This document shows, one piece after another, positions 49,113-58,600 of a stretch of 64,000 bases of DNA. The translations under genes and the position numbers were made by a program. The notes under the pieces are model-generated. The model was not told where the DNA came from. It worked only from the letters and a program-made list of their open reading frames with translations, and searched no databases. Position 1 is the first letter of the stretch. Each line of letters opens with the position of its first letter. Origin of the DNA: Salpingoeca rosetta (taxonomy: Eukaryota > Protista > Choanoflagellata); assembly GCA_033442325.1 (NCBI GenBank), contig JAWQFM010000011.1, forward strand, positions 1,075,162 through 1,139,161. Direction: 5' to 3'.

Positions 49113-52690
<3,578 letters not shown>

Positions 52691-53015
52691 CACGGGCATG
52701 TGCTTGTTGTTGGGTGTTGTGTCTTGTCCGGGTCTGAGTCCGTGTGCGTGTGCATGTGTGCGACTTGTGGTCTTATGGAATCATTGTGTGGATTCGCTGT
52801 ACATATGAATGTGATGCATGTTGTCGTTGGTGCGTGTGTGTGTGTGTATGTCAAGGTAAACTCGTTTAGCGTCGCCACAATACACGCGCGTTCCACCATC
52901 AACGCCAGCGAACAATAGGGAGAAGAGCACAAGAAAGAGCGAAAGCGCAGGAACAGCTCGGGCAGCAACAAAGAACAGTCGAGAGCCACGTACAAACACA
53001 AGACAGAGATAGCAA

Positions 53016-53047
<32 letters not shown>

Positions 53048-53065
53048 ACAATGCTACACGAGTGG

Positions 53066-54439
53066 TCATTCGCCCGTGTCAATGAGCTCCTCGTTGTTTC
53101 CCAGCAGCGGCTCCCGCAGACCGCCACCGCCACCACCACCGCTGCTGTTGCCATTGCTGTCATTGGGGCGTGTGGGCGTTCGGTCCAGCGAATCTTGCGT
53201 CACGTGTGCACGGAATGCTGTGGATTGCATCATGGGTGGCCCAAACGGGCGCTGAGTGATGGTCTTGCGGTGGTGCATGTACGTGCCAGCCTCGTCACCA
53301 AGGCCAACCTCCTCTTCAATCTCGGTGCTGGTGAGCAGCGGTGTGGCCTTGGTCGGCTCCAGCCCAAAGGGGATGTGGCCAAAGGTTGCGTCCATGCCAA
53401 GGGGCGCGTCCATGGATGGCATGTGTTTCCAGTAGCGAAACGCGGCGCCCTGACGGCCCCACGACACTTCTTCGTCCCAAACGCGTTTCAACACATGTTC
53501 GCAGCCGTGCGCGGAGAAGGGGTCGTACATCATCGCAGACACCTTGAACCAGCCAACCTGTAAGCAAAGGGGGGGGGGGAGGACAGAGGTGGTGGGATGT
53601 TGGGAACGCGAGGAGTGGATGGTGGGAACGGGAACGTGCGTGTGCGTGTGTGCGTGTGTGTGTGTGTGTGGGGGGGGGAGGATTGTCAGACACGCTCACA
53701 CAAACAGACAGACAGATAGATCGTCAGGCAGAGCCACGGACAGACAGACAGGTCGGCAGACAGGCAGACACAACCACAGACACATGTGCACACACAGACA
53801 CACACACAGACACACACACAGACACACACATGACCACACACAGACACACACACACACACACACAGACCAACACACCACATTAGCTGCACAGGAACAGGTG
53901 GCGGAAGCGACTTACGAAGAAGATAAACTCCATCATGCCAAACCAAGGGAGGTAGTAGTCCACAGTCTCGCCATTACGCAATCGCGGGGAGGATGAGGGA
54001 GCAGCTTCGTTGCTGAGGTGGAACTGGCGCCCAAACACGGCCGCAAGGAAGTACGAGTACACGGCAAAGCCAATGATGTTCACCATGACAATCGGGATGG
54101 GGTGGTTGTTGAAGCCACGCAGGATGGCGTTTGACGTGCGCCACGCAACCAGCTCCTGATTGCGGCGTGTTGCGTGTTGTGTGTGTTGTGTGTTGTGTGG
54201 TGTGAAGAAGAAGAAGGAAGCAACGGACGGGTGGATCAGAGGGTAAGCGAGACACGGGGCACACACAAGAGCGTTTGAGATGCAAATTCATTTGGAGGCA
54301 CAAAGTCAAGTCATCCACACACACACACACACAGAGAGACAGACAGGCAGATAGATTTACAGACACACACACAGAGATAGATTCACAGACACACATGCAG
54401 ACAGACAGACAGACAGATGCACAAATAACCCCCTGGCCA

Positions 54440-54521
<82 letters not shown>

Positions 54522-55924
54522 CCCAACGTTCAGCCACGGCTTGCGTTGCCACTGACCGTCCTGAGGAGGCGGAGATGGGAGGAGGAGACGACGTGTTGCG
54601 GGCGGTCGCGCTCGGCCCGGCGAAGCAGCTCCCCAGCCCACAGATAGCAAATCTCCACCTGCGCCTCGCACGTTTCCAAAAGCTCCCGCTCCTCGTGGGT
54701 GAGCAGGCCGGCGTCCATGAAGCTCTGCAGGTCTGGGTAAAGCTTACGGAAGCTGGTGGAGATGCGCTGGAAGGTGATGCCCATGCCGAGCAGGATCCAC
54801 CGCATAAACGTCCATCGCACGTGCAGGCTGCCAGGGGCGAGGAAAGGCGAGGAAAAGCGGGGAGTGGTGGTGATGGTTGTGGTTGTGGTGGTTGTCGTGG
54901 TTGTCGTGGAGGTGAACGAGTGGGAATGGTGGTGGTGTGAGCATGAGACGCACGAGAAGCAAGGCATTGGAACGCACGCACAGCATTGGAACGCACGCAC
55001 AGCATTGGAACGTGCGCACAGCATTGGAACGTGCGCACAGCATTGAAGCGTATGCATATATGCATGCGGAGAGATGAACAGCAGCAGAGTGAAGCATCCA
55101 AAGCACATGTCAGAGCAGGCAGGCCAAAAAAAAAATAAAAATAAGAAAGAAAGCAAACAACAACAGACACATAGACAGCACTGCCAAGCGGTCACACACG
55201 GCAGTGGCGTCTCACCCCTCTGGGCCATCACGGTCGTCCATGTCGTGAATGAGAATGGCAATCTTGCCGATCCAAGGGATGGCTTGCCACTGGCTCCACC
55301 AGCGCCCGTAGACTTGTGTGACGTAGAAGCCCAGCACAAAGGTGAGGGGGATCAAGCCCTGAAAGCTCTTGCAGTAGGAGAAGAACGCCTCCATGCGGGA
55401 CTGCACATGGTCATCGGACAGACGGTACACGGCTCCGACGATGCCGTACATCAGCAGCCAGATCAGCAGCTCTGGCACCACAGCCTGCAATGGAGTTGTG
55501 ATGCGAAGGTGGGGGTGTGAGCGCATGCATGGTGTGAGAGAACAGGATGACGAGCAGGCGCGGGTGCAGGCGCGGGTGCAGGCGCGGGTGCAGACGCGGG
55601 TGCACGCAAGGGAAAGTACACTGGCAAAGGAGTGTAGGCTGGGGAAGTGCACTGACAAGGCGTGCAGACTCACGCATACACACACACACACACACATGCA
55701 AACAAACACACACACACACACATGCAAACAAACACACGCACAACCACACACAACCACACACGCACCTGCCAGATGGAGTAGCGCCAGACGGAGAAGAGCC
55801 CCTGTCTAAAGATGGACAGTGGTTGTACATAGGAAGTTGACGACTGCTTGGACCGCCGTAGGTCCTTCTTCCACAACGGCGGGTCCTTCAAATGATCGTA
55901 CGGATCAGGGTTGAAGATGCCCAT
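53066..55924 (-). CDS. Bestrophin-family anion channel (metazoan-type), 5 exons, degenerate Ca2+ clasp
   Basis: SVWRYSIWQ; [28 protein letters not shown]; AGLLTHEE; [27 protein letters not shown]; [15 protein letters not shown]|[14 protein letters not shown]. Confidence 0.93.
54964..55046. repeat. 19-bp minisatellite GCATTGGAACGYRCGCACA, about 4.3 copies, in a bestrophin intron
   Basis: Direct read; two copies of one variant followed by two of another. Confidence 0.9.
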
Positions 55925-56564
55925 GATGCTTTGGGGTGCAACGTGGAGGCGAGGTGGAGGTGGGAGTGTTGCAGCGAGCGAGCGAGCCAGCGGCCACAAC
56001 TCAGACTCGTTGACGACAGCACAAAAGGTAGTCACACAATCTCCTGCCGTTTTGTTTGTTTGTGTGTGGCGCTTTCCTTTTCCTTCTGATCGCGATCGCC
56101 GCTGTATCCCTGCCGCTACCTCTCTTGTGTTCTGTTTATTGGCGCCGCCTTGAGTGTGCCCTGCCCAACGAACCATTGGCTCCCCCCTCTCTCCCGTGAC
56201 TGCCTTTCAAGTGCAAGCGTCGTTTGCGTTTGCGTTTGCGTGTGTGTGTTGATTCGGTTTGTCAATTCCTTTCCATTTTGCGTGCGACAAAGCCCCCCCC
56301 CCCGCTTGACTTTACACCAGCGCACGTCATCGACAACAGCCGCCACTCTTGTTTGTTGTTGCGTGTTTTGTTTTGGTTTTGTGCTCTGACGCGTGGTTCG
56401 CTTCAAGCTAGAAGTGCAGCAAGCTCTGTGTTGTTCGCACAACCTTGACGACTGCTTGGTTCGTTGGTTCCTCAGTGACTTGCTTGGTTTTCTTCAAACG
56501 TTGCTGACTCGGGTCAAATCATCTGAATGGTCGAGCACTCCCAACTGCGCCCACGCCGTACACC

Positions 56565-57574
56565 ATGCCTTCATCTGACGATGACGACGCAAGTCAACAA
56601 GGGGAATCTACCATCGAGCCTCTCAATACACGGGAGGCGCGCCGGCCACTTCACCACATCGCTCGTGGACCAGTGGCTCGAGCAGCGCCTCTTCCTCCCT
56701 TAAGCATCCATCGTCGCCAGTCAATTGCTTCCTCCCGCGCAGACTCGGCCACCGCCGACCACACGCCGCCGCCTTCGTCAACCTCGTCCACCCCTCTTCT
56801 CGCCGCCTCACCCTCATCCTCGCGTTCCTCCTCAGCCGACTCATCGGCGCTCTCCTCGTCCTCCTCGTTGTGCTCGCCTTCCTCGAACGCGTCTCCCCTG
56901 CCAAACGCGTTTCCGCCGCATGCGCTCGCGCCGGCACTGGGCGAGCGGCAACGCGCAAGGTCCCACTCTCTCGATGCGGCGTGGCCGGCGCCCAATCACG
57001 CCAAGGACCCTGATGGCGGCGGCAACAGCATGATTGGCGCCGCCCTCGCTACACCGCCACGCACTGCCTGCAGCCCATCGTCAAAGATGCTCACGGCGAA
57101 GATGGTCACCAAGGAGATTGCGTATCTTGACGGCGCCGAGGATGGGTTTGGCCGCCGCCGCGGTGGCCGTACACGACGACCCAACAGGCGCAAAATCATC
57201 ATCAAGGAGCTCAAGAGCATCGGCCGCCTCGCTAGCATGACATCCCTGACCACCCTCTTCAGGTTGGTGTGGTGTGCCTGTGCGTCTGTGTGTCTGTGTG
57301 TCTGTGTTGGCGTTGCTTTTGCACACGCCTTTGCGTCCTCCCTTCTTTCACTCACTCACTCACTCTTTCACTCACTCACTCACGTTATTCGATGTCACGT
57401 GCGCCTGCATCTACCGCCATGGCAACAGTCTCGCTATCCTGGCCACCAACACGGCGTTTCTTGGCCATCTTGGAACGAACCAGCTTGCCGGCAGCTCCCT
57501 CGCACAGGCCTTCATGATTGTGCGTCTGCAACAAACATGCTGTTGTGGTCAAGTCCGTGTGTGTGTGTGTGTGT

Positions 57575-57608
<34 letters not shown>

Positions 57609-58600
57609 GAAAGTGGGTGAGCGTGCAGAATGGCGTTTTTTTGATCTCACGCGAGTATTCTCTGGTTCCTTCAACTGCAACGCTTGTCCTCTTGTCCATC
57701 ACAGCTTGCGACGCTGTTCATGTATGGCATGGCGAGCACCATCAACACGCTCGCATCGCAGGCCCACGGCGCCGGCAACAACTTGCTCGTCGGCACCTGG
57801 TTCCAGGTGTGAGTGTGTGCTTGTGTGTGTGTGTGTGTGTTTGTGCATTCTTCTTGTTTTTGTTTGTGTGCGCGCCCGTCGTATCATGGATTGCGATGCT
57901 TGCATGAGCACACCCTCACCTCACCTCACATCCCCATGTCACTTCTCCGCGTGTGCGTGTGTGTGTGTGCAGGTGTCCCTGGTTGGCACCACGGTTCTCT
58001 CTATTCCCGTCATCCTCATCTTCTGGTTTGCGGGACAGGTGAGCGCTTTTCGCAAGCATCGTGGCGCGTCATGCGATTGCGATTGTGCCTTGTGTGTGTG
58101 TGTTGTGTGTGTGTGTGTGTGTTGATTGTGAAGAGTGGCACGGCTGTTTCACTCACCGCATTATCATGTGCGTGCGAACGTGTGTTTGTGCGTATGTTTC
58201 TATTGCAGCTTGTGGGCCTGGTTGAGGAAAACGAAGACGTCATTCGCTTTGCCACGCTCTTTGCAAGGTCGCGCCCGTGTTTGTGTGCGCTTGCGTGTTC
58301 ATATGTGTGCCTGTAGCTTCTTGCGCGCGCGCGCGTGTGTGTGTGCATGAGCGAGACGCGTGTCCTCACCGCTTCGTGACCCCTATCAACACTACTGTGC
58401 AATGTACTCTCAGGTGGTCTGCGCTGACGGTTTGGCCAAACGGCGTCTACGCGGCCGCGTGCCAATACTACCAGGTGCCGCCCACCACTCAAATGCCCCC
58501 TTGACGCCCCTTGATGCATTTGCTGTCTTTGGCGCATGTGTGGTTGGTCGTCGCAAACAACACACAGAAATTCACACCATGTCCCCGTCTGCGTGTCTGT

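Follow-up and report, generated by a model that had tools for sequence, protein, structure and literature searches.

The choanoflagellate Salpingoeca rosetta has a bestrophin gene, PTSG_04541, in which a loop containing histidines and a cysteine occupies the place of the acidic Ca2+ clasp known from animal bestrophins. We favor, with a probability of roughly 0.55, the reading that this protein represents a lineage of bestrophins lacking the canonical Ca2+ clasp, in which a Cys-centred, Ca2+-independent latch stands in its place and nanomolar Ca2+ does not switch the channel there. The members of the lineage so far are four choanoflagellates, all of them craspedids, and three eukaryotic contigs from the environment. 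Judging by these sequences, the S. rosetta bestrophin probably opens by a signal other than the Ca2+ activation known from animals.

Bestrophin is a human eye-disease channel, and the clasp is a hot spot of the disease mutations in human BEST1. To our knowledge, only one clasp-less relative has been characterised, KpBest, which is bacterial and distant. The S. rosetta protein is a natural and conserved clasp-less bestrophin of otherwise animal type, and it raises the question of whether Ca2+ gating was born with animals or lost in choanoflagellates. Choanoflagellates are the sister group of animals and their closest living relatives, and are genetically tractable; the role of the clasp without canonical Ca2+ binding, and likewise the origin of Ca2+ gating, are therefore directly testable. 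The protein is also a scaffold for swaps between A-H-G-C-E and E-D-D-D-D, by which the ordering of the clasp could be separated from Ca2+ binding.

Gene structure and family membership

Positions below are those of the window, i.e., the whole analysed stretch of 64,000 nucleotides of S. rosetta DNA. PTSG_04541 occupies positions 53066-55924 on the minus strand and consists of five exons that encode 476 amino acids. Compared exon by exon, the translations of the window have zero mismatches to the database protein P0151 ("hypothetical protein PTSG_04541", labelled "Bestrophin homolog" in UniRef), and this database entry was used for all whole-protein analyses. All four introns are of the GT-AG type, with lengths from 281 to 401 bases, and the acceptor of exon 5 reads ttacAG at 53558-53563. 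The open reading frame is clean, as the initial annotation had it. The features of the gene are as follows.

55766..55924, minus strand: exon 1, with the ATG at 55924; residues 1-53, with 22 residues more at the N-terminus than animal bestrophins have
about 55835-55873, minus strand: N-terminal stretch of exon 1 that starts with W-K followed by 11 further residues, conserved across the lineage
55216..55484, minus strand: exon 2; residues 54-142 and two bases of codon 143; the first transmembrane and pore-lining helices
55326..55352, minus strand: hydrophobic neck I98-P-L-T-F102-V-L-G-F106, the equivalent of Best1 I76/F80/F84
54557..54827, minus strand: exon 3; the last base of codon 143 and residues 144-233; cytosolic helices
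54734-54742, minus strand: L-Y-P, within exon 3, where the family has R-F-P
53916..54155, minus strand: exon 4; residues 234-313; the lineage signature R-G-F-N-N-H-P-I-P, the third membrane helix and the start of S4a
53066..53557, minus strand: exon 5; residues 314-476 and the TGA stop; the last part of S4a, the loop equivalent to the clasp, S4b and a tail of low conservation
53495..53524, minus strand: clasp-equivalent loop D325-P-F-S-A-H330-G-C332-E333-H334, which faces N296-P-F-G-E-D301-D-D-D304-F of Best1
53501..53503, minus strand: codon of Cys332, at the D303 position; invariant in 7 of the 7 clasp-less relatives

The reverse complement of 53557..53483 translates to 25 residues, of which the ten of the loop correspond exactly to 53524..53495. 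The loop is contained in a single exon, and the intact neck (55352..55326) and the L-Y-P variant of the R-F-P signature (54742..54734), both read earlier from the DNA alone, are confirmed as well.

The Pfam family PF01062 matches P0151 with 220 bits (cut-off 24.2) over residues 43-327, the match ending just before the loop. Exons 2, 3 and 4 each pass the PF01062 cut-off singly, exon 2 alone with 76.9 bits. The profile of the other bestrophin family, PF25539, has no match to P0151 at E 0.01 or better; for lineage members it scores 27.0 bits with P0005, which is at the cut-off of 27, and 17.9 bits with P0001, which is below it. In an AlphaFold2 model built from a 56-sequence alignment, pLDDT is above 90 through most of residues 50-250, and the loop (residues 325-333, pLDDT 77-85) connects helix 304-324 to helix 334-352. 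When the model was compared with known structures by Foldseek, the best 22 matches were all Best1 or Best2 chains (target-normalised TM 0.77-0.89, 26-30% identity), followed by KpBest with TM 0.67-0.79. The neck residues F102 and F106 are invariant across the 56 aligned sequences. The R-F-P signature is absent from P0151; the lineage has L, A or R followed by Y-P, with the proline alone common to all. PTSG_04541 is an intact bestrophin gene, with a bestrophin-like neck and fold, and we infer from the model that its product assembles as a homopentamer.

The position of the cytosolic aperture in Best1 (205, Ile or Val) is tentatively occupied by Ser226 (window 54578-54580), with a two-residue gap nearby in the HMMER alignment; human Best2 likewise has serine at this position (PMC11685958).

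The clasp position

In Best1, the ligands of Ca2+ are the D301 and D304 side chains, the backbone carbonyls of A10, Q293 and N296, plus a molecule of water, and mutants in the acidic cluster are Ca2+-insensitive channels (PMC8496536). The clasp is completed by the N-terminal helix-turn-helix of the neighbouring protomer (PMC11685958). Both MAFFT and HMMER place A329-H330-G331-C332-E333-H334 of P0151 opposite E300-D301-D302-D303-D304-F305 of Best1 without gaps, which bears out the initial proposal that a His/Cys loop has replaced the acidic clasp. The five clasp positions (A-H-G-C-E) retain a single acidic residue, E333. The acidic cluster typical of Ca2+-activated bestrophins, with the ligands D301 and D304, is not found in P0151: D301 is replaced by His and D304 by Glu.

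The replacement is rare. An exhaustive HMMER search with exon 2 as the query retrieved 922 relatives, and the 150 best representatives were examined, 83 of them with an alignable clasp region. At least four of the five acidic clasp residues are kept in 74 of these 83 representatives. The nine exceptions comprise two close relatives of PTSG_04541, two sequences with three of the five acidic residues, and five without aligned clasp residues. Of the remaining 51 sequences in the 56-sequence alignment, all (100%) carry Asp where P0151 has H330, G331 and E333, and 86% do so where it has C332. The cluster varies in animals, too, where it reads EDDVR in the representative P0061 and DADGD in P0126; in these proteins, however, three of the five acidic residues remain and the sequence after the loop is still of animal type, whereas the choanoflagellate lineage has at most one acidic residue and a post-loop sequence of its own.

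The S. rosetta protein resembles vertebrate Best1 and Best2 (PDB structures: 4rdq, 6n26-6n28, 8d1g and 8d1o) in the order of helices, the I/F/F neck and the length of the S4a-S4b loop. It differs from them, apart from the E300-D304 cluster, in the replacement of F305 by His and of N296 by Asp, in L-Y-P for R-F-P, W-I-G-K for W-P-D-R and Met for Y236, and in the longer N-terminus. Sequence similarity to the vertebrate proteins also stops at the loop; in particular, local alignments of P0151 with the solved Best1 and Best2 sequences break off at residues 329-330, where the loop starts, and exon 5 alone produces only chance-level matches to PDB sequences. Ca2+ activation through the canonical site would not be expected in such a protein. 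With KpBest and PF25539 it shares the class of pentameric bestrophin folds, at only 11-16% identity and TM 0.67-0.79. KpBest is without a Ca2+ clasp and Ca2+-insensitive, and has an I/I/F neck (PMC8496536), in contrast to the eukaryotic I/F/F type of S. rosetta. A point of agreement with PF25539 is that the choanoflagellate loop opens with D-P-F, not N-P-F.

The gene does not appear to have an alternative exon that could supply the acidic cluster. Within the gene and downstream of it, the minus strand from 50000 to 53773 and from 53849 to 58000 encodes neither four acidic residues in a row nor a peptide of the type P-F-G-acidic; its single acidic run, at 56852-56866, is upstream of the ATG. 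The segment in between, 53774-53848, is a GT-rich portion of intron 4. Introns 3 (54165-54520) and 4 (53640-53890), read on the gene strand, both have long GT-rich tracts first and CA-rich tracts last.

We found no paper on the PTSG_04541 protein or on a Cys/His clasp in bestrophins. The channel family is already known, and a Cys-centred clasp loop in a bestrophin is undescribed in the papers that were searched.

A lineage with a conserved loop

A word search recovered four close relatives. Three of them are complete open reading frames in transcriptomes of other choanoflagellates, Microstomoeca roanoka, Hartaetosiga gracilis and Salpingoeca infusionum, which are 72%, 57% and 53% identical to P0151, respectively, and have the H-G-C-E-H loop in their mature frames. 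The fourth, the metagenomic gene P0005, is 44% identical and has the loop T-G-C-E-H; its contig has a further bestrophin-like open reading frame upstream. Two more members, L007 (loop C-P-F-D-T-H-G-C-E-L) and L011 (loop D-P-F-S-D-T-A-C-Q-L), were identified on contigs to which N-terminal fragments returned by the exhaustive search belong, so that their selection was independent of the loop motif. Aligned to the S. rosetta protein, the last exon of L011 covers residues 234-363, loop included, with 41% identity and no gap; its alignment with a vertebrate-like representative ends at P-F.

The acidic cluster is present in none of the seven members, and P326, F327 and C332 are the only invariant residues of the loop. 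G331 is kept in six of seven and so are E333 (Gln in L011) and D325 (Cys in L007); H330 and H334 are kept in five each, the first histidine being replaced by Thr in P0005 and L011 and the second by Leu in L007 and L011. In the five sequences from S. rosetta, the three other species and P0005, all of G331, C332, E333 and H334 are invariant. The H-x-C-x-H pattern named in the initial annotation is therefore conserved in S. rosetta and the three other choanoflagellates but not in the wider lineage: with only the cysteine invariant in all seven, H-x-C-x-H is a feature of the S. rosetta subgroup.

Among the same five sequences, which are 44-72% identical overall, 17 of the 27 residues at 324-350 are invariant, compared with 38% over residues 92-360, and this stretch ranks second in conservation among windows of 27 residues, after the pore helix. 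By these numbers the replacement is strongly constrained; at the level of sequence conservation, few parts of the protein are as constrained as the clasp loop, which is not a product of decay. The five sequences form one branch of an unrooted tree (SH-aLRT 100%), with a long branch that parts them from the sequences with the acidic cluster. Being unrooted, this tree fits a loss of the cluster in the lineage as well as its gain in animals.

In animals, the N-terminal segment of the neighbouring subunit supplies the other half of the clasp, and in the lineage this segment is remodelled as well. Ca2+-activated bestrophins have a short N-terminus (M-T-x-T-Y...), of which the carbonyl of residue 10 contributes to the clasp of the adjoining subunit; the S. 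rosetta protein has the equivalent stretch, which is preceded by the 22 extra residues and differs in sequence from animals. A stretch of the type starting with W-K, ahead of the first helix, is found in all seven members. Other lineage-wide replacements relative to animals are W-I-G for W-P-D, L-Y-P-D for R-F-P-T, Met for Y236, and Glu for the Arg that follows D312.

Further searches added no members: a word search with the clasp piece of P0151 (residues 296-380) gave no candidate, and a metagenome scan with the alignment of five sequences as the query gave 184 pattern matches, none of them confirmed. Four short contigs from Tara Oceans and other marine metagenomes (L009, L010, L012 and L013) carry bestrophin fragments (P0023, P0037) with the lineage-like motif R-D-L-D-N-R-D-D-D-E-G, yet with V-P-W-P-G-K as compared to I-P-W-I-G-K; these contigs stop short of the clasp exon.

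Bestrophin complement of the genome

A search of the S. rosetta assembly (55.4 Mb, 68 contigs) with the PF01062 profile matched the PTSG_04541 locus and no other, which makes it the only animal-type bestrophin of this species. The profile of PF25539 (Bestrophin_2, bacterial/fungal type) matched two other loci: L004 (G000:C4:526070-526717, 137 bits), where the match sits in an open frame of 295 amino acids with the family motif D-P-F-E-G-x-x-N-D, and L005 (G000:C7:1509096-1509224, 34.7 bits). The only hint of expression of the S. rosetta gene is word-based, namely a share of 0.42 of the sampled words of the stretch, which is identical across ten listed runs from three studies. PTSG_04541 is a single-copy and, as far as can be told from its sequence, functional anion-channel gene.

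What the loop may do

The mechanism that we favor starts from an S4a-S4b loop that has the length of the animal clasp but no acidic cluster. The canonical seven-coordinate Ca2+ site, made of the side chains of D301 and D304 together with backbone carbonyls, would be unable to form as it does in animals, and nanomolar Ca2+ would thus not switch the channel through the clasp position. The Cys loop and the extended basic N-terminus may instead form a latch between the membrane and cytosolic parts that is independent of Ca2+, and either is permanently ordered or can be modulated via the thiol and imidazoles (by metal, redox, pH or acylation). Gating of the channel would then fall to other cues.

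A bolder version, which we consider unlikely, is that the Cys/His loop is a new sensor (of Zn2+, redox/NO or protons) and that the acidic clasp arose on the animal stem, in place of a loop of this kind. If true, the lineage would show how Ca2+ activation of bestrophins arose.

A transition-metal clasp in the S. rosetta subgroup is an equally tentative proposal, in which Zn2+ or a similar ion would take the place of Ca2+, as a permanent structural staple or as a regulatory ligand, and would be bound by H330, C332, E333 and H334, to which D325 and D21 of the neighbouring protomer may add. Cysteine and histidine are classic soft-metal ligands, and here His, Cys, Glu and His fall within one loop, occupy the positions of the Ca2+ cluster, and are invariant in four species (53-72% identity to P0151). 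The ligand set is broken, however, in the wider lineage (T-G-C-E-H, H-G-C-E-L and T-A-C-Q-L), where H-x-C-x-H is not kept, so that a His/Cys metal site could exist at most in the S. rosetta subgroup; and our literature search found no paper on metal effects at the clasp site.

It is rather improbable that the protein has retained a Ca2+ sensor in the form of a remodelled site, probably of lower affinity, with E333 and D325, backbone carbonyls and acidic residues from the extended N-terminus as its components. A weaker or differently built site of this kind, e.g., residual binding via E333 and D325, is conceivable, since the carboxylate of E333 stands where Best1 has D304, a Ca2+ ligand, D325 stands where it has N296, each is kept in six of the seven members, and D21 is a lineage-conserved carboxylate as well; moreover, three of the known ligands are backbone carbonyls and do not depend on side chains (PMC8496536). 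On the other hand, all members have His or Thr where D301 would be, neither E333 nor D325 is universal, and four of the five acidic residues are missing, when mutation of the cluster abolishes the Ca2+ sensitivity of human Best1 (PMC8496536). A residual Ca2+ site would also leave the strict conservation of Cys and Gly unexplained.

The invariance of Cys332 in all seven members, and its location eight residues past the predicted end of helix 304-324, are consistent with a role of the thiol only: Cys332 might be S-acylated, a lipid anchor taking the place of the ion-bridged clasp, or serve as a redox/NO switch, with His and Glu tuning its reactivity. We think this quite unlikely, as a buried packing role accounts equally well for the conservation of the cysteine, and a single thiol hardly seems enough to explain why G-C-E-H is so strongly conserved in five members.

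Finally, a non-conducting modulatory subunit of heteropentamers, which the initial annotation had offered as one possibility, or a decaying gene, would agree with the altered R-F-P and several other altered near-invariant residues, but is very improbable, given that the genome has no second PF01062 locus to provide a partner, its other bestrophin-like loci being of the distant PF25539 type, and that the frame and neck are intact, the introns canonical, and the protein conserved across genera with orthologues in transcriptomes.

Other observations at the locus

The residues P463-L464-L465 (window 53102-53110), about ten residues before the C-terminus, are invariant in the five aligned lineage members; the tail around them is otherwise unconserved and predicted to be disordered. 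This P-L-L motif could be a sorting signal of the dileucine type.

Two perfect repeat arrays are located 2-2.5 kb past the 3' end of the gene: (ATG)x53.7 at window 50625-50785, which reads as about 54 Asp in one frame of the plus strand, and (AC)x53 at 51194-51299.
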